From Macrostomum lignano (lineage: Eukaryota): 64,000 nt of DNA. The DNA lies in contig NIVC01000975.1 of assembly GCA_002269645.1 (NCBI GenBank), positions 310,001 to 374,000 of the forward strand, in the 5' to 3' direction. Shown one piece after another: positions 5,784-63,300 of the stretch; within the stretch, counting starts at the first letter, position 1; every line of letters begins with the position of its first letter. The notes under the pieces were generated by a model that worked only from the letters and a program-made list of their open reading frames with translations, ran no database searches and had not been told where the DNA came from. The position numbers were made by a program, and so were the translations under genes.

Positions 5784-6724
5784 GAGTATAACTTTGGCCG
5801 TCAACTTTTCCGTTAACTTTTCCGTCAACTTTTCCGTCAACTTTTCCATCAACTTTTCTGTCAAGTATTCTGTCAACTTTTCTGTCAAGTATTCTGTCAA
5901 CTTTTCTGTCAAGTATTCTGTCAAATTTTCCGTCAACAATTTATTGTTCTAAAAAAACATATGTGACTTTCTCAAATAGGATCATCATGTGAGTAGCTCT
6001 TTAATCATTTATTGTGTTTGCATACTTATATATATCGATGAAAAAACAAACCTGCGTTAGTAACAATGTGCATCTTTAATTTTTTCCATTTTCTCTAGTA
6101 CCAGCGCTTCATTTCACAAAGATAAATTGATGAATAAGTGCAGATGTTGAAGTGCAGGTAATAGTGCAGCAATACCAATTAAATTCTGGAACATGTCGCG
6201 CTGGAAATTTTTGTGTTTTTTATTTAGAATTTATACATGTACATAAATGTGTATACTCTCAACAAATTTAAAGCATGTATAAAATATTGCTAAGGAAACT
6301 GCACTTATGCAAAAAATTAACACTTTTTATTCAGAGTACACAAAAAATTTGATAGAATATATTTTACGGACTTGCATAAATGTGATGAGAAGTGATGAAG
6401 TGAAGTGAAGTGAAGTGAAGAAGTGAAGTAAAGTTGATGAGAAGAAAAGTGATGAGATATTTGGCGGAAAAGTTAACGGAATAGTAAATGGAAATGTTGA
6501 CAGAAGAGTTAACGAAAAAAATTATCGGAATACTTGACGGAATAGTTAACAGAAAAGTTAACGGAATACTTGATGGAAAAGTTAATGGAAAAGTTAATGG
6601 AATAGTTGATGGAATAGTTGATGGATAAAGTTATTTATCCTACTAACACGAAAAGTTGACGGAATAGTTGACAGAATAGTTAATGGAAAATTTAACAGAA
6701 AAGTTGACGGCCAAAGTTATACTC
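5784..6724. mobile_element. Foldback-type non-autonomous element with 12-bp subterminal repeats
   Basis: GAGTATAACTTTGGCCGTCAACTTTTC at 5784 is mirrored by GAAAAGTTGACGGCCAAAGTTATACTC ending at 6724. Each is followed inward by tandem 12-bp GTCAACTTTTCY-type units in opposite orientation. No clear TSD. Confidence 0.65.
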
Positions 6725-45312: not shown

Positions 45313-46625
45313 TCAAGCGATGGTGAATCCGGGCTTCACAGCCCACGGCACGACCTTGCGCTCGTACAGGTGCTCTCCTATTGGCTCCTTGATGCCGGGA
45401 GGCAGGGTCGCCAGGTACACAGGAGTGTCAGCGCCTTCATAGATAGTCTTTGGTCCTTTGTGGCTGGTCATATCCGTGTCCACATAGCCGGGACAGCAGC
45501 AGTTGATCACAATGTCGTCTCCCTTGATATCCCTGGCCTGGGCGTAGGTCATGAGACGGACGCCCACCTTGGAGACGCCGTAGGCGGTCTGCGGCCAGCC
45601 GGCCTCCTGCACTGTGCCGGCCTTGGCTCTGGCCACGAAATCCGACATGAGCTGCTTCACCTGCGGTTGAGGACAGAAGGGGTGGTTTGGTTATGTCTAT
45701 GGTAAACACTGTCCGCAGCCTACAGGATTGGTTATGTCAATGGTAAGCACTGTCCGCAGCCTATAAGATTAGTTATGTCTATGGTAAACACTGTCCGCAG
45801 CCTACAGCTTTGGTTATGTCTATGGCAAACACTGTCCGCAGCCTATAAGAATGGTTATGTTTATAGTTAACACTGTCCGCGGCCTATAAGATTGGTTATG
45901 TCTATGGTAAACACTGTCCGCAGCCTATAAGATTGGTTATGTCTATGGCAAACACTGTCCGCAGCCTATAAGATTGGTTATGTTTATAGTAAACACTGTC
46001 CGCGGCCTATCAGATTGGTTATGTCTATGGTAAACACTGTCGGGAGCATACATGACTAGTTATGCCTACAAGTTTAAAGTTACAGTAAAGTGTTGCACAT
46101 CACTTCAAAGACAGCACTTACCTCATCCAGACTCATGGGCTGCGTGAGCTTCTTCTGCAACTCCGGAGAAGCCTTGTTGAGTGCCATGTCGCTAACGCTG
46201 CTGCACAGGTGCACAACCCGAGCGTGCGGCTTCAGCAGGGGGAACAGCGCGTCGCAGACACGCAGAGTGTTCCAAAAGTTGGTTGCTATGGTGACCTCTG
46301 CTTGCTCGGCGAACGGCGCGGTCGAGTCGCCCTTGTAGGCAATGGCAGCATTGTTAACGAGAATGTCGAGGCCTCCGTAGGTGCCTTTAAGGTAGGCGGC
46401 GAGGCGGTCCACGCTCTCCTGACTGTCGATGTCCAGCTGGTGAAATCGCGGCTCGACTCCGCGCTTCTTCAACTGGCTCAGAGCATCGGCGCCGCGAGCT
46501 TTGTCGCGCGAGGTCAAATAGACGGCCCAGCTGGAGCCCAGCTGCTTGCAGAGCTGCTCCACAATGGCGAACCCGATGCCCTTGTTGGAGCCGGTCACTA
46601 CGGCCACCTTCAGTGCTGAGGCCAT
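45313..46625 (-). CDS. CBR1: Carbonyl reductase-like SDR, copy A; exons 46122..46625 and 45313..45660
   Basis: VAVVTGSNKGIG (TGxxxGxG), LDILVNNAAIAYK, catalytic YGVSK, INCCCPGYVDTDM and GADTPVYLA. Phase-0 intron GTAAGT...CCGCAG. The symbol is family-level. Confidence 0.92.
45688..46045. repeat. 41-bp minisatellite in the CBR copy A intron
   Basis: Unit TGGTTATGTCTATGGTAAACACTGTCCGCAGCCTATAAGAT, about 9 copies. Confidence 0.95.
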
Positions 46626-46834
46626 GGCGCTGCAATAGGGGACAGGAACTGCTGGGACTCACTTGGGGTTAGGGTATTGGCTCTGAAGGAGTGCCACGAA
46701 GTCTTCCCAAAAATTCCCCTGCGATTCGGAAGGATTACCTTCAGATTCCCCTTGGGGTTCCCAGGAATTTCTTCCTTTGTTTCTAAAACACTCTAATGCT
46801 GTTTAAGATTTCCCAAAATTCTTATCGGAGGTAA

Positions 46835-47715
46835 TCTAGGATTCCCTATCTGGGGTAGTCTAGGATTCCTTATCTGGGGTAGTCTAGGATTCCCTATCTG
46901 GGGTAGTCTAGGATTCCCTATCTGGGGTAGTCTAGGATTCCCTATCTGGGGTACTCTAGGATTCCCTATCTGGGGTACTCTAGGATTCCCTACCTAAGGC
47001 ACTCTAGGATTCCCTACCTAAGGCACTCTAGGATTCCCTACCTAAGGCACTCTAGGATTCCCTATCTGGGGTAGTCTAGGATTCCCTACTTAAGGCACTC
47101 TAGGATTCCCTACCTAAGGCACTCTAGGATTCCCTACCTAAGGCACTCTAGGATTCCCTACCTAAGGCACTCTAGGGTTCCCTATCTGGGGTACTCTAGG
47201 ATTCCCTACCTAAGGCACTCTAGGATTCCCTACCTAAGGCACTCTAGGGTTCCCTATCTGGGGTAGTCTAGGATTTCCTATCTGGGGTAGTCTAGGATTC
47301 CCTATCTGGGGTACTCTAGGATTCCCTACCTAAGGCACTCTAGGATTCCCTATCTGGGGCACTCTATGATTCCCTATCTGGGGCACTCTAGGATTTCCTA
47401 TCTGGGGTACTCTAGGATTCCCTACCTAAGGCACTCTAGGATTCCCTATCTGGGGTAGTCTAGGATTCCCTATCTGGGGCACTCTATGATTCCCTATCTG
47501 GGGTACTCTAGGATTCCCTACCTAAGGCACTCTAGGATTCCCTATCTGGGGTAGTCTAGGATTCCCTACTTAAGGCACTCTAGGATTCCCTATCTGGGGT
47601 ACTCTAGGATTCCCTATCTGGGGTACTCTAGGATTCCCTACCTAAGGCACTCTAGGATTCCCTATCTGGGGTAGTCTAGGATTCCCTACTTAAGGCACTC
47701 TAGGCTTACCCATCT
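46835..47715. repeat. 24-bp minisatellite between the CBR copies
   Basis: CTAGGATTCCCTATCTGGGGTAST and CTAGGATTCCCTACCTAAGGCACT variants, about 36 copies. Confidence 0.97.
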
Positions 47716-48165
47716 GGGGCATATACAAAGTTGAATTAACAGCTAAACAGTATTCATTATGAAACTAACTAAAAGACGTTACAAATATTTTGGCATCAAT
47801 GTTAAAACACTACAGAAGATCAGGGATATTTTATCATGAAAAATTGCTATAAAAGAGTCAGAAATAGCTTAGTATATATAAATTTCAATTACTACACTAC
47901 AGTCTACGAACATGTGAAAGCAGCATGATATAGAAATAAAATTGCCAATCATGAAGACAAAAAATGTAAAAGATATCATTTAGAATGGTTCAGCAACCTC
48001 GCACCTACGCTCGTAGATAAATAGAAAATTAGAATAAAGAAAAATAGATAAAATAAAGATTATAAAAAGTTAATGCCTACTTACTGAATTTATCAAAAAG
48101 CTAATTATTTAATAAAATGTATAACTACTGTTTAATAAAGTCTCGGATTGAAAATCTACCAGATG

Positions 48166-49688
48166 TCACACAAATTTAAAGTCGGGTTTCACAGCCCACG
48201 GCACGACCTTGCGCTCGTACAGGTGCTCTCCTATTGGCTCCTTGATGCCGGGAGGCAGGGTCGCCAAGTACACAGGTGTGTCAGCACCTTCATAGATAGT
48301 CTTGGGTCCCCTGTGGCTAGACATATCCGTGTCCACATAGCCGGGACAGCAGCAGTTGATCACAATGTCGTCTCCCTTGATATCCCTGGCCTGGGCATAG
48401 GTCATGAGACGGACGCCCACCTTGGAGACGCCGTAGGCGGTCTGCGGCCAGCCGGCCTCCTGCACTGGGCCGGCCTTGGCTCGGGCCACGAAATCCGACA
48501 TGAGCTGCTTAACCTGCGGTTGAGGAGGGGGGGGTTGATTTGGTTATGTCTATGGTAAACACTGCCTGGAGCCTACAGCTTTGGTTATGTCTATGGTAAA
48601 CACTGTCCGCAGCCTATAAGATTGGTTATGTCTATGGTAAACACTGTCCGCAGCCTATGAGATTGGTTATGTCTATGGTAAACACTGTCCGCAGCCTACA
48701 GCTTTGGTTTGTGTCTATGGTAAACACTGTCCGCAGCCTACAGCTTTGATTATGTCTATGGTAAACACTGTCCGCAGCCTACAGCTTTGATTATGTCTAT
48801 GGTAAACACTGTCCGCAGCCTACAGCTTTGGTTATGTCTATGGTAAACACTGTCCGCAGCCTACAGCTTTGGTTATGTCTATGGTAAACACTGTCCGCAG
48901 CCTACAGCTTTGGTTTGTGTCTATGGTAAACACTGTCCGCAGCCTACAGCTTTGGTTATGTCTATGGTAAACACTGTCCGCAGCCTACAGCTTTGGTTTG
49001 TGTCCATGGTAAACACTGTCGGCGGTCTATAAGATTGGTTATGTCTATGGTAGACACTGTCCAGAGCCTATAAAATTGGTTATGTCTATGGTAAACACTG
49101 TCGGGAGCATACATGACTAGTTATGCCTGTAAGTCTTAAAGTTACAGTAAAGTGTTGCACATCACTTCAAAGACAGCACTTAACCTCATCCAGACTCATG
49201 GGCTGCGTGAGCTTCTTCTGCAACTCCGGAGAAGCCTTGTTGAGTGCCATATCGCTAACGCTGCTGCACAGGTGCACAACCCGAGCGTGCGGCTTCAGCA
49301 GAGGGAACAGCGCATCACAGACACGCAGAGTGCTCCAAAAGTTGGTTGCTATGGTGACCTCTGCTTGCTCGGCGAACGGCGCGGTCGAGTCGCCTTTATA
49401 GGCAATGCCAGCATTGTTAACGAGGATGTCGAGGCCTCCGTAGGTGCCTTTAAGGTAGGCGGCGAGGCGGTCCACGCTCTCCTGACTGTCGATGTCCAGC
49501 TGGTGAAATCGCGGCTCGACTCCGCGCTGCTTCAACTGGCTCAGAGCATCGGCGCCGCGAGCTTCATCGCGCGAGGTCACATAGACGGCCCAGCTGGAGC
49601 CCAGCTGCTTGCAGAGCTGCTCCACAATGGCGAACCCGATGCCCTTGTTGGAGCCGGTCACTACGGCCACCTTCAGTGCTGAGGCCAT
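48166..49688 (-). CDS. CBR1: Carbonyl reductase-like SDR, copy B; exons 49185..49688 and 48166..48513
   Basis: Near-identical to copy A with the same exon lengths (504+348 nt); has NNAG and YGVSK; donor reads GTTAAG. Confidence 0.9.
48540..49105. repeat. 41-bp minisatellite in the CBR copy B intron
   Basis: Same family as 45688..46045, about 14 copies, dominated by the CTACAGCTT variant. Confidence 0.95.
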
Positions 49689-49734
49689 GGCGCTGCAATA
49701 GGGGACAGGAACTCAGGGATCATATTATAGGTCA

Positions 49735-50260
49735 CCCCCGGATTCCCCTGAGATTTTCCTCGGATTTCCTAGAATTGCGCTTAAGACTATCGGCGGATTT
49801 CCTTGCATTTTCTCCGGTTTCCTTTGAATGCACTTTGGATTCCACTGGGATTTTCCCCGGGTTCCCATGAAATCTCCTCTGGCTTTCCTTGGGATTCTCC
49901 TCGAATTTCCCCTGGTATTCCGTAGAGTTACAACTAGGATTCTCCTTGAGTTCTCACTGGGATTCTATTTGGGTTATACAGGGATTCGCCTTGGGTTTCT
50001 TCCTGGGTTCCACCTGGGATTCTCCACGGGTTGCCCCTGGGATTCTCCACGGGTTGCTCTGGGATTCTCTTAGGATTCCCTCTGGGATTCTGATCGGGTT
50101 TCACATAGGATTCCCTCGAGTTCTCACTGGGATTTTCCTCGAGTTCCTACTGGGATTCTCCTCGGGTTTTTCCTAGGATTCCCTCGAGTTCCTACTGGGA
50201 TTCTCATCGGGTTTTTCCTAGGATTCCCTCGAGTTCCTACTGGGATTCTCCTTGGCTTCT
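49735..50260. repeat. Degenerate GGGATTCYC-rich repeat upstream of CBR copy B
   Basis: Recurrent GGGATTC/GGATTCCCT motifs with irregular period. Confidence 0.65.
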
Positions 50261-50729
50261 AGAATGGACAGAATGGATCTTCTACAGTCATATTTCCATT
50301 GAGTCTCTATTTAATCCTAGACTCTATAGTACTTTTTTCTAAAGTATACTCGTACTCTCAGCAGTAAACTTGGCAGTAAAACAAAAATGAAAATCAACAC
50401 TAGCAATACATGAAAAACTAAAGCAAACAGTTTCTAATTGGCCTACACTCAATTATATTTCAAGAACAGTACACTAAAAATAAATAGAAAATACAGACAG
50501 CAGCCACTCCAGAAAGAGAGAAAAATCAATATACAAGTAGTGTCGAAACTCCGGGCCATAACAATTACTACAATACATATCGGCAGCAGCAGATGGTTTC
50601 CAATGCAGCAGTATTTGCGCAACACGGAGGAGCGCCTTTTTTAATATCGCGTACGCAAAAATATCGAATACTCTTTTATCTACTACCACTTAGCTGACGG
50701 ACACAACGCACCAGCACTGGAACGCGCAA

Positions 50730-51011
50730 CTACCTGTAGTAAAAGTACAAGTAGTAGCAGCCAGCGGAAAACAGCAGCATAGCCGCAGCAATACCGATTC
50801 TGGTTGACCACCGCTTTCGCCACCGTTTCACCTCCCAGTTCTTCATGTTGGCTCGCATCCGATCGATCTGTTCCTGGGTTCGGCGCAACCGCTCCGATTT
50901 GCTTCTGCGCCGGATTTCTGCGCCAGCTGGAGTCCATTGTGCTGGATCGGCGTCAGGCTCTGCGGACTCTTCTTCGAAGGCTGCCGGCGAGGCCTCTTCT
51001 GGGGTAGACAT
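50730..51011 (-). CDS. Small (93 aa) protein with coiled coil and C-terminal TM helix, unidentified
   Basis: ATG 7 nt after an acceptor-like CTTCAG, with GC-rich codon usage like the neighbouring genes. Acidic N-terminus, then ERLRRTQEQIDRMRANMKNW, then hydrophobic IGIAAAMLLFSAGCYYLYFYY. Possible donor GTAGTT just before the stop. Confidence 0.65.
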   Translation of the reverse strand: MSTPEEASPAAFEEESAEPDADPAQWTPAGAEIRRRSKSERLRRTQEQIDRMRANMKNWEVKRWRKRWSTRIGIAAAMLLFSAGCYYLYFYYR

Positions 51012-51116
51012 GCTTCTGCTGAAGTGTGTGCGAGTGACTGACACATGTACGCGCACTCTACTATTAGTAGGCACTAATACTCTAGATCAAAAACAATTTA
51101 TTTGCGACCTGAGAGG

Positions 51117-51800
51117 TGCAAGACAAGAGATGGAGGGGAGATGCAAGATAAGAGACAGATGGAGGGGAGGGGATGCAAGATAAGAGACAGATGGAGGGGA
51201 GGGGATGCAAGATAAGAGACAGATGGAGGGGAGGGGATGCAAGATAAGAGACAGATGGAGGGGAGGGGATGCAAGATAAGAGACAGATGGAGGGGAGGGG
51301 ATGCAAGATAAGAGACAGATGGAGGGGAGGGGATGCAAGATAAGAGACAGATGGAGGGGAGGGGATGCAAGATAAGAGACAGATGGAGGGGAGGGGATGC
51401 AAGATAAGAGACAGATGGAGGGGAGGGGATGCAAGATAAGAGACAGATGGAGGGGAGGGGATGCAAGATAAGAGACAGATGGAGGGGAGGGGATGCAAGA
51501 TAAGAGACAGATGGAGGGGAGGGGATGCAAGATGAGAGACAGATGGAGGGGAGGGGATGCAAGATTAGAGACAGATGGAGGGGAGGGGATGCAAGATGAG
51601 AGACAGATGGAGGGGAGGGGATGCAAGATGAGAGACAGATGGAGGGGAGGGGATGCAAGATAAGAGACAGATGGAGGGGAGGGGATGCAAGATAAGAGAC
51701 AGATGGAGGGGAGGGGATGCAAGATGAGAGACAGATGGAGGGGAGGGGATGCAAGATAAGAGACAGATGGAGGGGAGGGGAGATGCAAGACAAGAGACAG
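51117..51800. repeat. 32-bp purine-rich minisatellite
   Basis: (GATGCAAGATAAGAGACAGATGGAGGGGAGGG)n, about 21 copies. Confidence 0.98.
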
Positions 51801-52791
51801 ATGGGGGAAATGCAAGGAAGGATTTACAGCAAGAGTGGATATTACAACAGTTAAAAGCAATGAAGCTCCAAGACTTGTATCCTCATCGAGAAATGAGATT
51901 AATAAACAGAATTCCGATAGCAGAAGACTCAAGCGCGGTATTAATTTCAAACTTCATTAAAAAAAACAAAGTCAAACGAAAGTACGACGCAAATTTTCGC
52001 TAGAGTTTGAAAAAAAGATCTGCTTATTAAAACAAAACTGTATACAAGACAAAAAAGGGCTACAAAAGCAGGGTTACGAAAAGCCATACTAAAAATGTGG
52101 TCTGGTAGTTTTATTACAGAGATTCATCAAGCAGAGAAATTGATTGATTGGTCGTTAGTCGCAAGACTATATGAAAAAGCTCCAGGCTGACACACAAGAA
52201 GACGCTGGATTTTATAATTATTTACAAAATTAATACTATTTGTGAGTTTTTTATTTACCTGGCTAGAGCGATCCGGCAACTGCGGATGACCAGAAAGGAA
52301 ATTAAAATTAAAATTACAGCAATAATAAATATGATTATTCTAAGCAGAGATTGTATTTAGACCATAGAAAAGACAGGCATTAATATCAGAGATTTGCCGC
52401 ACTGTCTAATAAAATTCCAGCTCATCATCCAAGCCATAGAATATTTTATTACAGATTTTAATTGCATAGCAACTGCGTAGCAACCGCATAGCAACAGCGT
52501 AGCAACCACATAGTAACCGTAATACCGCATAGCAACCACACAAGGCAACCACACAAGGCAATGTCCCCACATCTTAAAATTCTGAAATAATAATCAATAA
52601 ATTTATCGAGCTGTTTCTATGGCTACTTTCGCTTATATTTATCATACAAAACATTGAAAAACATGCAAGTATCTTTTGATCCGAGGAAAAAGTCATACAC
52701 AGACGCGCGCACACCTCGAGTTGATATTATAAATCAACGAAAAAAAATGATACATGTTCAAAATGAGTGAAAGCGACCAGCTGGCAGAGCG

Positions 52792-55700
52792 TCAAGCTGC
52801 TCCCATCTGATAAACCAGGTAGGCGCCCAGGGCAGTCAGCAGCGAGATCCAGGCCAGGTCGCGCAGACGAACGACAGGCGTTGGAATCGGCTTGAAGGCG
52901 GCTTCAGCAGCATCGACGCCCGCAGCTGCTGCCCTCTTGTCGTCGGCAGCTTCGTCTTCCTCATTGTACAGTGGAAATGGAACGCCGCCGCCGCCACCGC
53001 CGCTAAGCCTGTGCTGGCAGCTCAGCCAGGTGGTCCTCTGCCTGTCCAGGTTACCCCGCAACAGACTATAAGCGTTATCGTTTATTGCTGAAGAATGATT
53101 GCTGCCGCCGCTGCTACTAGAAGAAGATTCGTCATCAGAGTCGCCGGCCTCCGCGAAGCTGTTATTAGCCATGCCGAATTGTCGCCTGTCGGCCTCGTCG
53201 ATGCTAAACGACAAACTGTCGGCCCGATCGACTCCGTTAGCCAGTATCGCCCGGCCGCCCATGACAACGGCCTGGTAGCAGAACCGCAGCTGGTCCGGCG
53301 TCTGCACCAGGCCCATGCGGTCGCAGCGGAGGCGCCGGATCTCGCCGGGCAGGTCAACTCCGTAGAGGCTGCCACGACGGGCGATCAAAGCCAGGCAGAC
53401 GTCTATGACTGCCAGGCTGCCTGTCCGGCCAATCCCCGCCGAGCAGTGGACAACCGGCGGCCTGTCCGGGTCAGACAGGAGGCCCGAACGGCGGACAGCC
53501 ATCAGGAAGTTCAGGAAAGCGCCCGGAGTCTGCGGCACCCCGAAATCCGGCCAAGTCAAGTACTGATAGTGCAGCAGGTCTCGAACTGCGGACGCCGGCT
53601 CCGGATCGCTGGTTTTATTGCTTAGCAACGACAACCGGAAGCCGCGAACAATGTAATAGCCAAATGATTCGGAAGAGACCAGCTCGACTCGCAGGCCAAC
53701 GTCCGGACAATCGACTCGTTTCGTTCGCTCGTCCGGAAAATACGGATGACATTTGAGGGCGCCTTTTTCAAATACTCGATTGAGCATGACGACTCCGCGA
53801 CTGCGCAGCTGCCACACCATCAGCCAGAAGTGGCCGACCGTGGCCGGCAGAGGGCCCTGGGCCATGGCGAACACCCGGCCGGCGTGCTCGGCTCGAACTA
53901 TGCTGGCATTGATGTAATCCCCGCTCAGGCCCAGGCTGCTGGCGTGCGACCGGCTGATCGGGGAGAGCCGCACCTACAGAGTTAATATCATTTGGAACAT
54001 TATAGATTTTGGAGATCATTAGGCAAATTATGGGATTTTTGGATAATTTGCGAGATTATGGGATTTAGGGATCAGTTAGGAGATCATGGGATCCGGGGAT
54101 AATCGGATGTGGGGATCATTTTGGGATTATCGGATTTGTGGATAATTTAGAAAAATTTGGAGACTATGGTATTTGGATAATTTGGGGGATTATGGAATTG
54201 GAATCATTTGGGAGATTAGATGATGTAGTTATTATTTAGGGATTATGAATGTGAAGCTTTTTTGGTAGATGGGATCCGAGGATCATTTGGGGATTTATGA
54301 AATTTGGGGTTCATTTGAGGATTAATGGGATTTGGGGATTAATGGGATTTGGGGATTAATAGGATTTGGGGGTAATTTGGGGATTAATGGGATTTGGGGG
54401 TCATTCGGGGATTAATGGGATTTAGGGATCATTTGGGGATTTATGGGATTTGGGAATAATTTGGGGATTTATGTTGTTCTGTTGTTGTCGGGGATTTATG
54501 GGATTTGGGATTAATTTGGGGATTTATGTTGTTCTGTTCTTGTTGGGGAATTATGGGATTTGGGAATAATTTGGGGACTTATGGAAGTCGGGGATCAGTC
54601 AGGATTGATCAAATTATCTAATTCATAAGCAGTCAATTCTGGGGATTCAAGCAATCTATCAACTACTGCAAGATAATTGACAGCATTCAAGAATATATTG
54701 AAGCCAGTTTTACCCGGCTATGGTCGTAGGGCAGCACGTCGCGGTACCGGTTGAGCAGCCGATTATCCGGATGCCTGGCAGCCGCCGTGCTCAGCGCAGC
54801 CGACGAAGGTCCGTCCGAACCCGAGGCCAGGCTCAATCGTCTATAAGCGTCCTGCCATAGGTTTCGCTCGTCATTGTTAGCCAGCTCAAGCTCTATGGCC
54901 GACAGCATCTCCCGGTGATTCGGGTGGCGGTACAGCGGCGAACCGCTGCGATCCACCGCCGCCTGGTCCACTGCTCCCGAATCCACTCTGTATTGAGTGC
55001 AGGCAACGGAGGCCGCTGGAGCGTCTGCGTGCTTGGTACTAAAACCTTTGCTATCAAAAGCTGGGTCCGATTCTCCGGGCAGACTTGATGGTGGATTGCA
55101 ATCTAAATTATAGACAGTACGAGTTCAGGTAATACAGGGATTTGAACTTGCGACACTTGGAATTGTGGGATTCAAATATTAAATATTGGCGGGAAGGCTG
55201 CGCGCACCCTGAAGCATTGCCTTTAGCGACATTGTCTCACGACCAGCCCGGAAGCAATTCTGCCCATTCCGCGACTCCGAGCACATTCAAGCTGCTCTCC
55301 ATGGGATCAAAACAGATACCCCGTGGGATTAAGACAGCCACCTCCATGGGATTAAGACAGCCACACCCATGGGATTAAGACAGCCATCCGATGGGATTAA
55401 GACAGCCACCCCCATGGGATTAAGACAGCCATCCGATGGGATTAAGACAGCCATCCGATGGGATTAAGACAGCCATCCCCATGGGATTAAAAAAAGACAG
55501 CTTACTTTCAGCCCCTATCCCATGGGATTAAGACAGCCACCCCGTGGGATTACGATAGCCATCCCATGGGATTAAAAAAAGACATCACTTTCAGCCCCCA
55601 CCCCATGGGATTAGGACAGCTCACCTTCAGCAGGCTGATCAGCGGCGGCAGCAACAGCAGCTCGAATCTCCTCGTCGAACTCGTCCAATCCGCCGGAATC

Positions 55701-55919
55701 TTCGCCCTCGCTATCCGAATCGAACAGTGGATTAGCAAACTGCTGCTGTCTCGACTCGCTAGATAGTTCTTCGCCTTCAACTAAACACGACTCCTCCGAG
55801 TCAGCTCGGACAGTCTCGGACACTGGGTCGTCCGCTTTTGGACACCCGGAATCGGCTTCTGTCCGGTTATCGTCTTCCACAAGTGCGGACTGACGCCGCT
55901 GAACGGAGATAGCATCAGA
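52792..55919 (-). CDS. PTPN1: Non-receptor tyrosine phosphatase, PTP1B/TC-PTP family, with C-terminal membrane anchor; exons 55625..55919, 54714..55102, 52792..53973 (start codon unresolved)
   Basis: NRYRDVLPYDHSRV, DYINAS, QGPLPATVGHFW, WPDFGVP, VVHCSAGIGRTG and RMGLVQTPDQLRFCY, plus a C-terminal hydrophobic AWISLLTALGAYLVY. Intron phases (1, 0) are consistent. The first in-frame ATG is only at 54908. Confidence 0.9.
53995..54600. repeat. Degenerate GGGATT-rich repeat in PTP intron 2
   Basis: Recurrent GGGGATTAATGGGATTT/GGGATTTATG units. Confidence 0.75.
55305..55615. repeat. 23-bp minisatellite in PTP intron 1
   Basis: Unit CCATGGGATTAAGACAGCCAYCC, about 10 copies. Confidence 0.9.
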
Positions 55920-56490
55920 CTGAAGATTGACACGGGCTCAGATAGATAAATAAGCATTGCATAGTTGGCTTTAGAGATAACTTGCACTTCTGCCCATAGA
56001 CGAAACAATTAGCTGGCAAGTACCAACTGGGAGCGGGGGCAATTTCATCAAGCCACTGGTTACTGGCACAGATACAAAGTACGCTGAATGGTTCACTTAA
56101 CTATATTTATAACAAAACTACTCTCTGTTCAGTAGTATGAGCGTAAAAAGCAACATTTATTTATTCAACTAGCTCTGATGGTTTTTATCCACTGCCAAGC
56201 TTGGCATAGCATAGATAAAAGAGAATCTTTATATGAAACCTACTTTTTATATATATGTTAGAAATTAGATTTAAAACTGTAGAATTCCATACTTTAACTC
56301 TTATCACTGGCTAAAGGTGGGCTTAAAAGAAACTCAAATTAGGGCAATATTTTATTTTAACTACAATGGTGCCACACTAAATTCAGATTTGTTTTGCTTA
56401 TATTACGGCTCGTATTCATAAATGTAATGATTGTCTTTTTTGTATAAATTTTAAATTATCAAATGCTTAAACTCTAACACTCATGCTTGG

Positions 56491-56646
56491 GCACAACCTA
56501 GGGATTCACCCAGCCATTTCTATTGGCAACACACACGTGTAAGTTGCTATTGGATGGAATAGTAGTCACGTGACTACTCTCAGCCAATAGCAACTTACAT
56601 GTGTGTGTTGCCAATAGAAATGACTAAGTGATTCCCAAGGTTGCGC
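56491..56646. mobile_element. 156-bp imperfect palindrome, probable hairpin MITE
   Basis: The arm CATTTCTATTGGCAACACACACGTGTAAGTTGCTATTGG is mirrored about the central GTAGTCACGTGACTAC, and symmetry extends to GCACAACC/GGTTGCGC. Confidence 0.6.
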
Positions 56647-56884
56647 ATATATGCTAACACTACATGCTCTCACTTGATTCACAATGTTTCATTTTCCCAT
56701 ACTAGTAGTAGTTCTGATTTTTCAAAATTGATTAAACATTACATTTTTTATTAAAAAGGTCAAGATTATAGTTATATATTAAAGCATATCATTTGATCAA
56801 CATCCTTGCAACTAAGCAGAAATTTTCCCATTTGCAAAGTTATGGCTTATAGCAATGTAAATTATTGCTATAAGTAGGGATTAA

Positions 56885-58534
56885 CCCTAATGAAAAAGGT
56901 TAAAATCAATGTGTCCATTGTGTGCCTATAGTCTACTTTTATCTTATAGACTTTGAATACTCAAAAGTTGCAATGTACAATGTTTTTAAATGCATTAATT
57001 TTAATTGCTACTATTCACTTTGGATTCTAATCCTTGAACTTTTATACTCAATATTATAAGTATATTATATTATAAACTATATTATTATAAATATGTATAT
57101 GCCTAGCAAATATTTAGATTAGTTTAATGAAATTTACTAAATTTATTAAAATATAAAAGGGTAACAAAGCATACGACTTATACTTGTAAATGCCATTCCA
57201 AAAGTCTTCAGAATGGAAAAGAAATCTAAATAAAACTTTTTGTTTGTCAACTTTAACCTATAAACTAAATTATTATCAGAAATATATATTAAGTCTTGTT
57301 GCCATTTACTTAGCCAACTCTGATTTAGAGTCTAATTAGCACAAACCCTATGCTAAAAGTCATGGAGCTTAAAAAATTGCAATTTTCTTATAATTATTCA
57401 CTATGATTTTAAGTGCAACCTGAAACTAGCAAAATGTTTTTCTCAGCTTGCAATACCCTTTCCCAATGAGTTTCTATCTTAATTGACTATGTATAACTAT
57501 TGCAACCCTATGCACTGTGCATACAATAACTTTTTGCTTTGCACATTGTATATGGGAGGGTGGGATCAAATCCACTGAGTGTATTGATGGACTAAAATGA
57601 GGGTTGCAAGTTGGGGCATTGTGACAACAAAGGAATAAAGGACTTTTTTGTGTTGCAACAATAAAGGACCTTTTTGCATTGTAACAATTTTTTTATTTTT
57701 TGAGACTGCAAATAAACAATGCTTTTAGAAATGCTTCCTTTGTTGCAACCTAAATATATTTTTTTGATTTTCATTTTTTGCATTTTCTATATTTCTCTTA
57801 CCATTAATTTATAATACTTACTTCAAAAGTGACAAGTATCACATATTTTTTATAAAAAGACTAAAAATTTCTGTGGCCCAGCTACTAGATAGCTTTAACT
57901 ATGGTGCTATGCATGTTTTACTTTTTGTATACCATATTATTGCTGTGCAAAGCTTGCCAAAAACCTTTTTAACTCCTTGATGCATGCCATGCATGTAGTA
58001 CTAGACTGCCTGGGACCTAGCATCTTTGCAATTGTGGATTGCAATAGGGCCTATCTAAGTCTTTGGAATCTATATACTCAATAAGTACTATATTTGCAAT
58101 CATATGAGCAGAGATTGGTTAAGATAGACTAGTATAAAAAATGCTTAAAATGTTAAGAAAGCCTCAAGGAATCTAGTTGACATTGTTAGAGGCAATAATA
58201 CTTAGATATACTAATATGACTCAAAGTCAAAGACAAATTGTTAATCAATAGTCTAATCTAATACTTTTCTATCATTATCAATATATAGACCCTAGAATGT
58301 TAGAAACAAGATAGGGACCTCCTTTATCATTGTTTCTAGCTATCTAGTTTTAGTGTCCCTAGATAATCATTGTACAATGACTATAGCATAGCATGGTATA
58401 CTAGCTATTACTTTCAAACTACAAAAGTAAACTACAAACTACAAAGTACTTACAAAACTTTCAAATAAACTACATGTATTGAATACTGAATAATATTTAA
58501 GTACTTTGTTAAAACTTTTTTGTCATTAAAAGGG
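56885..58534. mobile_element. Possible piggyBac-like non-autonomous element
   Basis: TTAA|CCCTAATGAAAAA at the left and (reverse complement) TTAA|CCCTTTTAATGACAAAA at the right; very AT-rich interior with no transposase ORF. Confidence 0.35.
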
Positions 58535-60369
58535 TTAATTTTAAATTTGCTTAGCTGCTGGCTTTGCTTAAAATGACCAAACAACCCAAAGATTGGGGCA
58601 AATGAGACTTGCAATATTTAAAATTCAAAGTATAATAATAATGATAATATTAGGCCTAATAGTAATACTAATGACAATATCGCTTTACTCGTAACATCAA
58701 TACACAAGACTAAACACAAACAACTTCACAATCTTAGCTGTGGGGATAAGCTAAAAATTATTGACATGGATCTGTGTGGATAAACTTGGAATTATTGACA
58801 TGGCCTATATAGACTTGAATGGTGGCAGCTATATTTCAATAAGCTGCCATGATGGGGATAAGCTAGGAATTATTGACATGGATCCATATAGATAAAATTG
58901 GAATTATTGGCATGGGACTATGGGGATAAGAACTTCCTACTTATATACATAACAATATTATGAATTCAGTTTTGTAATTTTGAATGACAGATAATGTCAT
59001 AGGTCTTAATTGATAAAATAAAAAGGATTAAAGACTCAGCCTCAGGCCTAGATTTTTCAACTTTTAAGTTTTATATATATCATATTTTGCTTTGTCAATG
59101 TTATTGTTAGGCCTAATAAGAAAGAAATAACAAATGCATTGAATAGGCACATCTACACATGATCATCACATGTGACAGAAGTAGCCTAATATTATTGTCA
59201 TACACGATCACGATGCATATTATACTAATAGACTACCAGGCTTATGATTTACATTAATTTATGCATAGAATAAGACCTACAAATCATTAAATAGTAGCCT
59301 GCAAATCTAAATAATATTAAATTGGGTACTCAGGGCCAGGGGCAAGGCAAGCTATCAAGCTATGCTATGCTAACATTGCGCTTTTCTTCATTGAATTCCG
59401 CCAATTTCTACGAATTAAAATTTTCGAAACAAATTTATAAAAAACGTTGATAATAAAAAACAGTAATAGATTTCGCGCTTATAAGCTTTTTCCATAATTT
59501 AGGTAACTCTAGTGACAAAACAAATAAATAAAACAACTAAAAAGTATTTTAGCAGAGTTTGCATGCAGCATTCGTTTTTACAAATTCAATCACATTAAAA
59601 CAGCATAAACTGCTACTGGGAACCTTTAGTCTATTATTTTACGGTGTTTAACAAGTGAAACACAGCTTGCTGTTAAAACTATTTTGATTCCCAATGATTA
59701 GTAAAAAAACTAGTTTTTTATGATTAAAACTACTTTATAATTAAGCAGAAAAATTTTCTTTGCACTAAATTTTCACTGTACATATAAAATATCCTTTTTA
59801 AAATTAATTCTTTGCTTCGTGCTCAGGTATAACTTTCAAGGGCCTTTTATTTCCAGGGAGTTCAAGTCTTAAAGCCATCAAGGTAATTGATTTTTGTGTT
59901 GCTTTTTGTCTACTCATTCAATTTTTACTAGTTCATAGCACGGGACAGTTTCTTTTTGTAATCAATAGAATTAAGCAAAACCATGTTTCGACTGCCTAGT
60001 ATAGTCCACACTACTGATGGACTACTGATGACGATATTCGGGTGCTGGAAGTATTCTCCATTTAAAATGTTCGACATGGGTTTTCAAAATGTCTCTTATA
60101 GTTTCTAATTTAATCTCTTGATAATTTAGGACTTCATCCATACCTTGAACGCCTCTGAAGAATCTTGGAGACATTGCGCTGTAGCGTTTACTGGCGAAGT
60201 ATATGGAGAACTCTTCGATACTCAGAATCTCATAAAAACTCTTAAAAGATTTAAGTTCAATCCTATTTCTAGACAAACGCGCGAGAGCAATTAACTTAAC
60301 TAGTATTTTCATTTTTGTAAACATATTCTCTGTCCGTCCAACATCTAAACCATCATATAACCGTTCAGA

Positions 60370-63300
60370 ATGAGCAGCACTAACAATCAGCAGCAGAAGG
60401 ATGCAAGCAGCAGCAACAGCACGCAGCCCTCGCTGTCAAGCGCAGCCTCGGGTAGCAACAACTGCGCCAAGACGGAGGACAAGGCAAGCCAAGGCAAGAA
60501 GCCTCGCGGTCCCCGAGCTGGGAGCAAGCGTCACCAGCACGAAGCTGGTCAGAGACAGCAGCAGCGACAGCTGATCCGCTACAACCGGGACACCCTCCTG
60601 CAGATGCGCGACTCCCGCCTGTCATCAGCCTGGCCCAGGGCTCTGAACAGAGCGTACGTGGGCGACGGAGGTCTGTGGGACCCGGTGAAACTCTTCGAGG
60701 GAGAGCGGAAGAGCGCCTTCGATGGCAAGACGAAGATTGAGCGAGTCAGGAACGGTGAGACTTTCTGCCATTTTTCTCCCATCTTGCCTGATAATTAAAC
60801 TATGTTGATGCTGCAACTCGCTGATCATCATCGCACCAAACTGAAATTTCAGTTCGTGGTGCCGCCATGGTGCAGCCATCTTACAGCAGCGGGCCCAGCG
60901 CCGAAGACAGCCAGTCGTTTGGAAGGTCATCGAGACGAAGAAGTGAGTTATTTTGTTTTTCTTGGTTGAAGTGACCATTCTAATGCTTGCACTCCACATT
61001 CATGCATTATAGTACGTGCAGTGTTATTTGTGTGACAACGATTTAAGACATAAATTATAAGCTACTAGGCGTTGTGAAATTAATTCAACTAGTTAATTGC
61101 AAATCGAGAAGAGGGGTGGTCGGCGGCCGTTCTGACAATTTTTTGGACTTATTGTACACCCCGTTTGGTTAATAATAGTTGGCAGAGGGTGAGTCCAATA
61201 TTGATTTTTCCATCGCTAATTTATTATGTTGGCTGGGCCAATCAGACTGCCCTTTGGCACTAGTCATGTGACATGCTGACTCATACCACCATGCGACTTG
61301 GAAGGTACAAAAGGGTAATGCTGTTGCTTATAGATAGTGCTAGCTAGGCTGGGTTTAGGTCAGCCGATGACTACTAATAGATAAATTGAGCAAAGTACAA
61401 ATCACAAAAATTAAGAAAGAAAAACTGCGGGGTGGTTTTTAACCATGGATGAATGAATAGAATGGATTGCTATTCTGGCTCTGGCTATTTTCGTTTTTGA
61501 CTCTTTTGCATCCAGTTCCCCCCCGTGCCTTTTCATTGGTTGATGATTGCCATAGACAATTTTCGGCCTTTGCCCCTTTCTTTCAATGCACAAGCGCTTT
61601 CTTGTTAGTAAATAGAAGTTACTTGTGTTGAAATTGAACTTTGTTGAAATTCTCAGTTCTTTGCGCTTGTGCATCGAAAGAAAGGGGCGAAGGCCGAAAA
61701 TTGTCTATGGCAATCATCAACCAATGAAAAGGCACGGGGGGGGGAACCGGATGCAAAAGAGTCAAAAACGAAAATAGCCAGAGCCAGAATAGCAATCCAT
61801 TCTATTCATTCATCCATGTTTTTAACACGCAAAAATGCAAACAATACACATGGAGTGCGAACGAAATAACTGGACTTCGTGTTTAGACCAACTTGATTGA
61901 AGAGACTGAATAGCAAATGAGGCCCGTGATTAAAACTGTCTATGGCCCGGAAGTGTTTTTAGATGACTGATGACGGGAAGCCAAAGTCGAAGGCAGAACT
62001 ACATGCCATAGACAGTTTTATCGCTCAGCAGCCAAAGCTTTCAAAGCTTTGTTTATGGCCATATACACTTTGTGTTTCCCTGACCATACACGACAGCCTT
62101 CGTTTTCTATTTTTCACGAGCCCACATGTACATGTAGATCCAAGAAAATGATATAATTTACTTGGTTATGCATGGTTTAGCTTCCTAACGATGCAGTGCA
62201 CGCGAAAGTAATATAATGCGTGTTGAGCAAGTGTATTATAAGAAGTTAAATATTATGGCATCCTTCGAGTATTAGTGGGATGAAGTGTCTCCCAAGGCCA
62301 AAACAGCACCACGAGTCGTAAAAAGTTTGATAAAATTTCAAACAATCTCAAATACCACCTGTCTAACTCGTAGAACGCACCAAAGAGGAGGCGGCGTCTC
62401 CCGCGGCGTCTTCAACGCAAAGGCAGCGCGGGTGGCCGCCTGGCAACGCAGCGGAGACCCAGCAGGCGGCCAAGTCTGCAGAGCCGGCGGCGGACGGCAG
62501 GAAGGAGCCGCGGGACGACGTCGCCAGGGGCTTCGGACCGTCTCGGCTTGGCGGCGGAGGCTCCGCCGGAGGCTTCGTTCGCCGGTCGGACCGGCCAGCG
62601 ACCGCTGGGGGCGTCAGCGGAGGCGGTTTCGGCAGCGGCCGAGGAGGTCCGGGCGTTTCCGGCCGGTGGGAGCGAAGCCAAGGCCTACGCGATCCTCAAG
62701 GCCTCCGCGGCGGCTTCCAGCCTCCGCGACATCGGCCCGCCGAGGAGGAGGAGCTGCCCGCCTGGTTCGATGAGGGACCGCTGGACAAGATGGAGAAGCT
62801 GGAGTTGACGGGCCTCCCCGAAGACATGGAGGCGGCCGAGGGCGACGGCGGCTCCAAGAAGACGGAGGCCACCCAGCAGCAGCAGCAGCAGAAGAAGAAG
62901 CCTCTCGACGGACTCGGTCTAGGCAGCAGCAGCTTCGAGAGCGGCGGCGGTTCCTCGTCGCGCTTCGCCAAGTGGCTGGCAGTGGACGAGGCGTCGCAGC
63001 CGCAGCCGCAGCCACCTGCAGCAGAGGCTGGGCAGCGAGATGGCGCTCAGCAGCAGCTTGAGCGAATCTTCCAGGACATGCGCGGCAGGCACGGACATGA
63101 GACCAATCAGCAGCCGCAGACTGCACCGAACGTTGGACCGTCGCTGATGCACCTGCTCCGCCCGCCGCAGCCGCCGCCGCCTCCACCACCACAAAGGCCG
63201 CTGCACGCTCAGGAGGTCGAGGCGAACCTCAAGTCGATGCTGTTCGGCTCTGAGGCGGCCGCTCCGCCACCACCGCCGCCCGCCGCAGTCGCCGCTGCAT

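Follow-up and report, generated by a model that had tools for sequence, protein, structure and literature searches.

A possible spliced-leader start codon for a PTP1B-like phosphatase gene of Macrostomum lignano

A gene for a PTP1B-like phosphatase lies on the minus strand of the window analyzed here, a 64,000-nucleotide (nt) stretch of Macrostomum lignano DNA whose letters match contig NIVC01000975.1 of assembly Mlig_3_7 at 100%. Its 5′ exon has 55919 as its first base and directly follows a splice acceptor at which the spliced leader of this species is very probably joined. The terminal AUG of the leader would then fall in frame with a coding-like first exon (E1) that lacks an AUG of its own in that frame, E1 would be cis-spliced to a predicted second exon (E2), and the frame would run stop-free into a putatively tail-anchored phosphatase of the PTPN1/PTP1B type. 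If translation began at the leader AUG, the product would have 622 residues and carry an acidic N-terminal extension of 163 residues, for which the genome holds no open reading frame (ORF) start. Leaky scanning past the weak leader AUG, across 489 nt that contain one other AUG, would lead to the methionine at codon 164 (Met164) and to a canonical form of 458 residues. That both AUGs are used, or at least that the leader AUG really is used for the phosphatase ORF, is in our judgement a finely balanced proposition.

M. lignano has a single 35-nt spliced leader, CGGTCTCTTACTGCGAAGACTCAATTTATTGCATG, which ends in ATG (...TTGCATG), and the motif enriched at its trans-splice acceptors is [T/C]TNCAG (PMC8629364). 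An earlier reading of this DNA from its letters alone (the sequence-only reading) had stated that flatworm leaders end in AUG, and the leader of this species bears it out. On the minus strand, to which all coordinates of the gene refer, the sequence at the acceptor reads tcaatCTTCAG/TCTGATGCT. The acceptor CTTCAG (55925..55920) meets the published motif and abuts E1, which opens in phase 0 (CTTCAG/TCT), just as that reading had it. The trans-spliced mRNA would read ...UUGCAUG/UCUGAUGCU, with the leader AUG in frame 0 with E1, and the expected string at the junction of leader and exon is ...ATTTATTGCATG/TCTGATGCTATC. We infer leader-bearing reads at this junction. In genomic DNA the frame is shut by an in-frame TGA (55940..55938), which had been placed a few codons upstream and lies seven codons 5′ of the acceptor, with no ATG before 55919.

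The deposited gene model begins with the base that follows the acceptor. In GenBank, the RNA sequencing (RNA-seq)-derived gene BOX15_Mlig024154g1 (Mlig024154.g1) is represented by a 156-amino-acid (aa) ‘partial’ product, whose 5′-partial coding sequence (CDS) starts at 55919 and is translated in frame 0 as SDAISVQRRQ... For the Mlig_3_7 annotation, the leader was trimmed from RNA-seq reads, the reads were mapped, transcripts were cut at the resulting peaks (TBONE) and ORFs were called by TransDecoder (PMC5730564). If a leader is trimmed together with its ATG at a mapped site, and the frame is open from the first base onwards, the CDS is reported as 5′-partial, as was deposited in this case. 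Two more 5′-partial CDSs within the window likewise begin 0-1 nt past an AG, an observation in favour of taking starts of this kind for splice acceptors.

The 4.4 kb upstream of the gene (55950..60400) have a GC content of 26-36%, and the AT-rich region as a whole (55926..60369) presumably comprises the outron and the promoter; its minus strand carries no annotated or coding-like exon. Coding potential was assessed with a codon-usage score trained on M. lignano coding sequence with homology support (1203 codons) and compared with 2000 shuffles. No coding-like stretch was found on the minus strand of these 4.4 kb, where the best score was −0.79 bits/codon versus +0.25 for E1, and the earlier impression of AT-rich DNA without a coding-like exon for about 4 kb upstream is thus upheld.

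Acceptors in flatworms are often common to cis- and trans-splicing (PMC12582326), and the acceptor at 55919 might also, or instead, be used in cis, with an unannotated short upstream exon supplying the ATG. We consider this very improbable. The deposited model has no upstream exon, the upstream 4.4 kb have the composition and lack the coding signal just described, and they contain only five GTRAG donors. The lone in-phase candidate, TTAATG/GTAAGA at 57804/57801, is a bare ATG in AT-rich DNA. This minus-strand site (57801..57804), the only in-phase ATG with a donor in the 4.4 kb upstream, was considered as a cis exon and judged to be probably due to chance. As a separate observation, it mimics the ATG/GTAAG end of a leader RNA gene and has no other similarity to such a gene. 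A leader RNA gene was sought throughout the window, and just one match was obtained, at chance level and with three mismatches.

E1 (55625..55919) is 295 nt long, i.e. 98 codons plus 1 nt; it is acidic and Ser-rich, contains no in-frame ATG and forms the first exon of BOX15_Mlig024154g1. Its last base, 55625, is followed by a strong donor in phase 1 (GAAG/GTGAGC). The predicted intron 1 (55103..55624; GTGAGC...TTTAG) pairs this donor, which is used in the deposited model, with an acceptor that we propose: taatttag/AT, with 55102 as the first exon base. Its AG is the first to follow 44 nt without any, and its phase fits E1. The E1-E2 junction, on which the link between extension and phosphatase depends, is accordingly a prediction from sequence. 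The first 65 codons of the predicted exon E2 (54714..55102) prolong the open frame, and from Met164 onwards (ATG at 54906..54908, context GAGAUGC) the exon encodes the start of the phosphatase domain, ending at the donor CGG/GTAAAA. The junction of E2 with the third exon, E3 (DHSR/VRL), agrees with that of PTP1B relatives and of the M. lignano paralogue discussed below. E3 (52792..53973) is entered through the acceptor ctgtag/GTG (first base 53973) and has 393 codons, which encode the phosphatase core (with the WPD loop, HCSAGIGR and QTPDQ), an acidic/Ser linker and a putative hydrophobic C-terminal anchor, followed by a TGA stop at 52794..52792. Both introns are rich in repeats: intron 1 contains a 22-nt tandem repeat in 12.5 copies (55299..55575), while intron 2 (53974..54713) is full of tandem repeats with 17-55-nt units, spanning 54027..54584.

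The joined E1-E2-E3 frame is open for 621 codons and its earliest ATG is codon 164 (54908), confirming the description of a frame that stays open for 163 codons through two exons. In the predicted mRNA there are no in-frame stops from the leader AUG to Met164, and the next in-frame AUG lies 163 codons downstream. The 489 nt in question contain 0/1/12 stops in the three frames (chi-square p=3.6e-5), and E1 alone contains 0/1/9; by shuffling, the absence of frame-0 stops from the 489 nt has a probability of P=0.0008. The codon score of E1 is 0.251 bits/codon in frame 0 versus −0.08 and −0.76 in the other frames, a value reached by 0/2000 shuffles. For the part of E2 that precedes Met164, the frame-0 score is 0.059 bits/codon, a value matched by 4/2000 shuffles. 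On the same scale, the phosphatase core scores 0.32 bits/codon, and introns and flanks range from −0.4 to −1.5. No plus-strand ORF exists that could explain the three-base periodicity of E1. The extension looks coding in frame 0; its product would have an isoelectric point of 4.15 and 23% Asp+Glu, and would probably be disordered.

Several observations weigh against the use of the leader AUG. Its context is weak (U at −3, U at +4), Met164 having G at −3, and the chance that a leader AUG falls in frame is 1/3. At third codon positions the extension has a GC content of 0.52; the coding sequences used for training have 0.70, and exon E3 has 0.71. Homologues of the extension were sought among 5.8 billion and 1.84 billion proteins: a word-indexed search found the deposited 156-aa product alone and a full HMMER scan one further weak match (E=2.7e-4), so that homologues provide no comparative evidence for or against coding. 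Nor does the extension align with that of the M. lignano paralogue BOX15_Mlig020360g1 (Mlig020360.g1), homology beginning only at residue 160. The leader AUG is also not needed to match a conserved N-terminus. Orthologues and PTP1B start at the position of Met164, which aligns within about 5 residues of human PTP1B residue 1 and coincides with the starts of other animal PTPN1-like proteins. Furthermore, the 489 nt contain one AUG in any frame, compared with 6.8 expected from base shuffling (P=0.007) and 7.5 from codon shuffling (P=0.0004). This depletion is the signature of a scanned leader and suggests that Met164 is used too. The sole other AUG between acceptor and Met164 lies at +5 in frame 1 (context CUGAUGC) and opens an out-of-frame upstream ORF of 44 codons (55781..55915). 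Lastly, E2 and E3 are absent from the sole deposited E1 transcript. Our reconstruction, E1 followed by 51018..50843, reproduces it exactly; E1 is joined out of frame to a tail exon with an ORF of its own.

These points fit a different explanation, in which a long 5′ leader is made up of E1 together with the first 194 nt of E2. The RNA would be trans-spliced and the leader AUG skipped or unproductive, with the phosphatase made from Met164 only, the tail ORF translated from its own AUG, and the open frame tolerated or retained as a relic. Met164 stands at the canonical PTPN1 start and at the start of the UniProt entry, the depletion of AUGs from acceptor to Met164 is strong, the leader AUG has the poorer context of the two, and the extension is without conservation; in the deposited isoform, moreover, the AUG that follows the one at +5 is that of the tail ORF. 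However, 489 nt free of selection should hold about six frame-0 stops and have none, and both the stop periodicity and the codon score favour frame 0. Leader AUGs initiate in other flatworms, and since no stop interrupts the frame, the extended protein would result from every such initiation. All considered, we find a purely untranslated role for these 489 nt rather doubtful.

The tail exon (50730..51018; acceptor CTTCAG/CAG) is read in the E1-to-tail isoform in a frame that scores −0.23 bits/codon, while its own 93-codon ORF (51011..50730) scores +0.13. This tail ORF, MSTPEEA...GIAAAMLLFSAGCYYLYFYYR, is colinear with the C-terminus (basic stretch and membrane anchor) of the PTPN1-like protein P0008 (residues 439-497 of 500; pairwise E=4e-4). 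As this ORF resembles a PTPN1 C-terminal tail anchor, the locus has two alternative endings that are tail-anchor-like. A phase-2 donor that could link the phosphatase with the tail exon was sought in E3, which contains no GTRAG and merely a weak CT/GTACAA. A 32-nt tandem repeat (21 copies, 98% identity) occupies 51128..51804 between E3 and the tail exon, and a 23-nt repeat in 11.5 copies is located downstream of the gene (50001..50259).

The structure of the deposited isoform raises the question of whether E1 is joined to the phosphatase exons at all. The trans-spliced RNA might consist of E1 and the tail. E2 and E3 would then either belong to a transcript of their own, begun within or close to intron 1, or be barely expressed; the match in phase would be a coincidence, and phase fit alone has a 1-in-3 chance. 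GenBank lists no phosphatase product here, the longest product being 156 aa, and NCBI was found to contain no protein with 90% or more identity to the phosphatase. Yet the assembly retained dominant isoforms only (isoform-frac 0.75) and the GenBank set omitted repeat-overlapping transcripts, so a phosphatase isoform missing from GenBank is weak evidence. A coding-like continuation of the E1 frame is offered by E2 alone and is missing from the E1-to-tail isoform, and the coding signature of E1 makes sense only if an E1-E2 mRNA exists. In addition, the open frame of E2 ends seven codons 5′ of its acceptor, which is preceded by the 44-nt AG-free zone, as would be expected if it were an internal coding exon. 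Were the leader joined at 55102, its AUG would fall out of frame, at the head of a 70-codon ORF overlapping Met164. We therefore regard a complete separation of E1 from the phosphatase exons as unlikely.

Protein searches place the encoded enzyme with PTPN1/PTPN2. UniProt entry A0A1I8G638 of M. lignano (458 aa) is 100% identical and starts at Met164. One PF00102 domain was identified (E=5.4e-61, residues 214-466 of the extended product), with WPD at position 370, HCSAGIGR at 405 and QTPDQ at 453; NRYRDV is also present, and the protein contains the catalytic Cys-X5-Arg. The named top matches are PTPN1/PTPN2 of many animals, and the best single-domain solved structures are those of PTP1B (about 1e-76). 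Over the C-terminal 21 residues the Kyte-Doolittle values average 1.40, and we read this hydrophobic stretch as a putative tail anchor. The predicted N-terminus of the short form is (Ac-)MLSAIELELANNDER. Other contigs encoding the 458-aa phosphatase, whether from another assembly or as an allele, were sought and none is on record; likewise, no mention of the gene ID or of PTPN1 was found in the text and supplements of the source papers.

The sequence-only reading held that the ORF exists only after trans-splicing. This stands for the 163-residue extension but not for the phosphatase, which has Met164 at the canonical start. Its central proposal, a start codon for the PTP1B-like gene supplied by the leader, is strengthened by the leader of the species, the acceptor motif, the start of the gene model at 55919 and the coding score, and is weakened by a deposited isoform that skips the phosphatase exons, by the canonical position of Met164 and by AUG depletion. 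With a weak leader context and an AUG-poor stretch of 489 nt, ribosomes that skip the leader AUG should reach Met164, and we infer translation from either AUG. In a more elaborate form, the locus would produce a two-start mRNA, yielding both a form with a lineage-specific acidic extension and, through a selectively AUG-free stretch, the canonical enzyme, while alternative splicing of the leader exon to the tail exon would give a tail-anchor-only product. We put this full scheme forward as speculation that is more apt to fail than to hold.

Were the two-start reading correct, which N-terminus is made would hinge on a start codon that the gene itself lacks. The two public models, the 156-aa ‘partial’ product in GenBank and the 458-aa UniProt protein from Met164, would both be incomplete, and for a systematic reason: pipelines that trim the leader together with its ATG make leader-initiated ORFs 5′-partial or shift their start to the next ATG. 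This would affect the annotation of M. lignano, for which the two source papers give the share of trans-spliced genes as 30% and 38.8%. The species being amenable to transgenesis, the locus would also offer a tractable test of how often a leader AUG is used with a canonical start far downstream.

Two tandem short-chain dehydrogenase genes follow on the minus strand, and their deposited 5′-partial CDSs begin at acceptors (49698..49688 and 46612..46607). In the first gene (TTGCAG/C GCC ATG) the CDS begins 1 nt after the AG, and a leader AUG joined there would stand 7 nt ahead of the ATG of the gene and out of frame with it. The CDS of the second gene directly follows CTGAAG (CTGAAG/GTG GCC), and there the leader AUG would be in frame, giving M-VAVVTGSNKGIG; it is a second possible case of a leader-supplied start in the window. 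The phosphatase/tail gene and the two dehydrogenase genes are arranged head to tail from 55919 to 45313 (55919..45313), with gaps of about 1.0 and 1.6 kb that consist largely of tandem repeats. They might constitute one operon if the 1-kb criterion of PMC8629364 is applied with its adjustment for repeats.

Further upstream, beyond the AT-rich region, the first feature that resembles a gene is a GC-rich plus-strand ORF at 60370. It is contained in an island of 64% GC (60370..60798, plus strand), is ATG-initiated, comprises 142 codons and lies outside the deposited annotation; it gave no Pfam match. Its sequence includes YNRDTLL, which we take to resemble the YxxxxL-hydrophobic motif of eIF4E-binding proteins.

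Among known phosphatases, the gene product resembles PTPN1/PTPN2 (PTP1B/TCPTP) in its lone PF00102 domain with NRYRDV, WPD, HCSAGIGR and QTPDQ, in its hydrophobic C-terminal tail and in the location of Met164 at the usual N-terminus of the family. It differs from them in the possible 163-residue acidic N-terminal extension and in the two alternative tail-anchor-like C-termini, one at the end of E3 and one in the separate exon at 51018.

A closer comparison is offered by the paralogue BOX15_Mlig020360g1, in which an acidic extension of ~480 residues is contiguous with the phosphatase domain in one exon and Leu occupies the position of Met164. Extended N-termini thus exist within this family in M. 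lignano. Like the predicted long form of the gene described here, the paralogue has a PTPN1-like domain (50% identical) behind a long acidic extension, and a hydrophobic tail end. In contrast, its extension is repeat-rich and unrelated in sequence, and a genomic ATG stands directly before the annotated first codon. The paralogue was considered as a second leader-AUG case and rejected, since a genomic TGCATG, without an AG, precedes its first codon. The ‘partial’ CDS (NIVC01002246.1, 5995..6003) begins right after this TGCATG, a match to the final 6 nt of the leader. Its 5′ end looks like a false leader-trimming site, and the genomic ATG at 5998 would complete the CDS.

Leaky scanning is known to produce two protein forms from one mRNA, and the M. 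lignano locus shares the corresponding layout: a weak first AUG, then a stretch nearly free of AUGs in all frames, then an in-frame AUG in a better context. The difference is that the first AUG would be supplied in trans and is not encoded at the locus, where use of either AUG is predicted from sequence.

The use of the terminal AUG of a flatworm leader as initiator methionine was described by Cheng et al. (2006, J Biol Chem 281:733), and the resulting reading frames were later termed ‘slORFs’ (as cited in PMC9851317). In Schistosoma mansoni, for which the sequence-only reading had rightly cited such initiation, 28% of trans-spliced transcripts have the leader AUG in frame, and over 40 complementary DNAs require it (PMC9851317). 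Leader-AUG initiation was supported again in Echinococcus granulosus (PMC3510090), and PMC12582326 repeats the leader AUG as a start among the general properties of the leaders of parasitic flatworms. According to the genome paper published in G3 in 2023, the Macrostomum leader probably includes the final ATG as translation start codon (PMC10468722).

The phosphatase gene is similar to the flatworm slORFs in that the leader ends in ...UUGCAUG, its AUG would be in frame with an ORF lacking a 5′ AUG of its own, and this ORF would be complete only in the mature trans-spliced mRNA. It is dissimilar in what the leader AUG does: in described slORFs it restores a conserved N-terminus or lies a few codons from another AUG, whereas here 163 non-conserved residues would be added before a retained canonical start. 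The mechanism has been known since 2006, and the locus is a further plausible example of it, unusual only in the added length and in the canonical start retained downstream.

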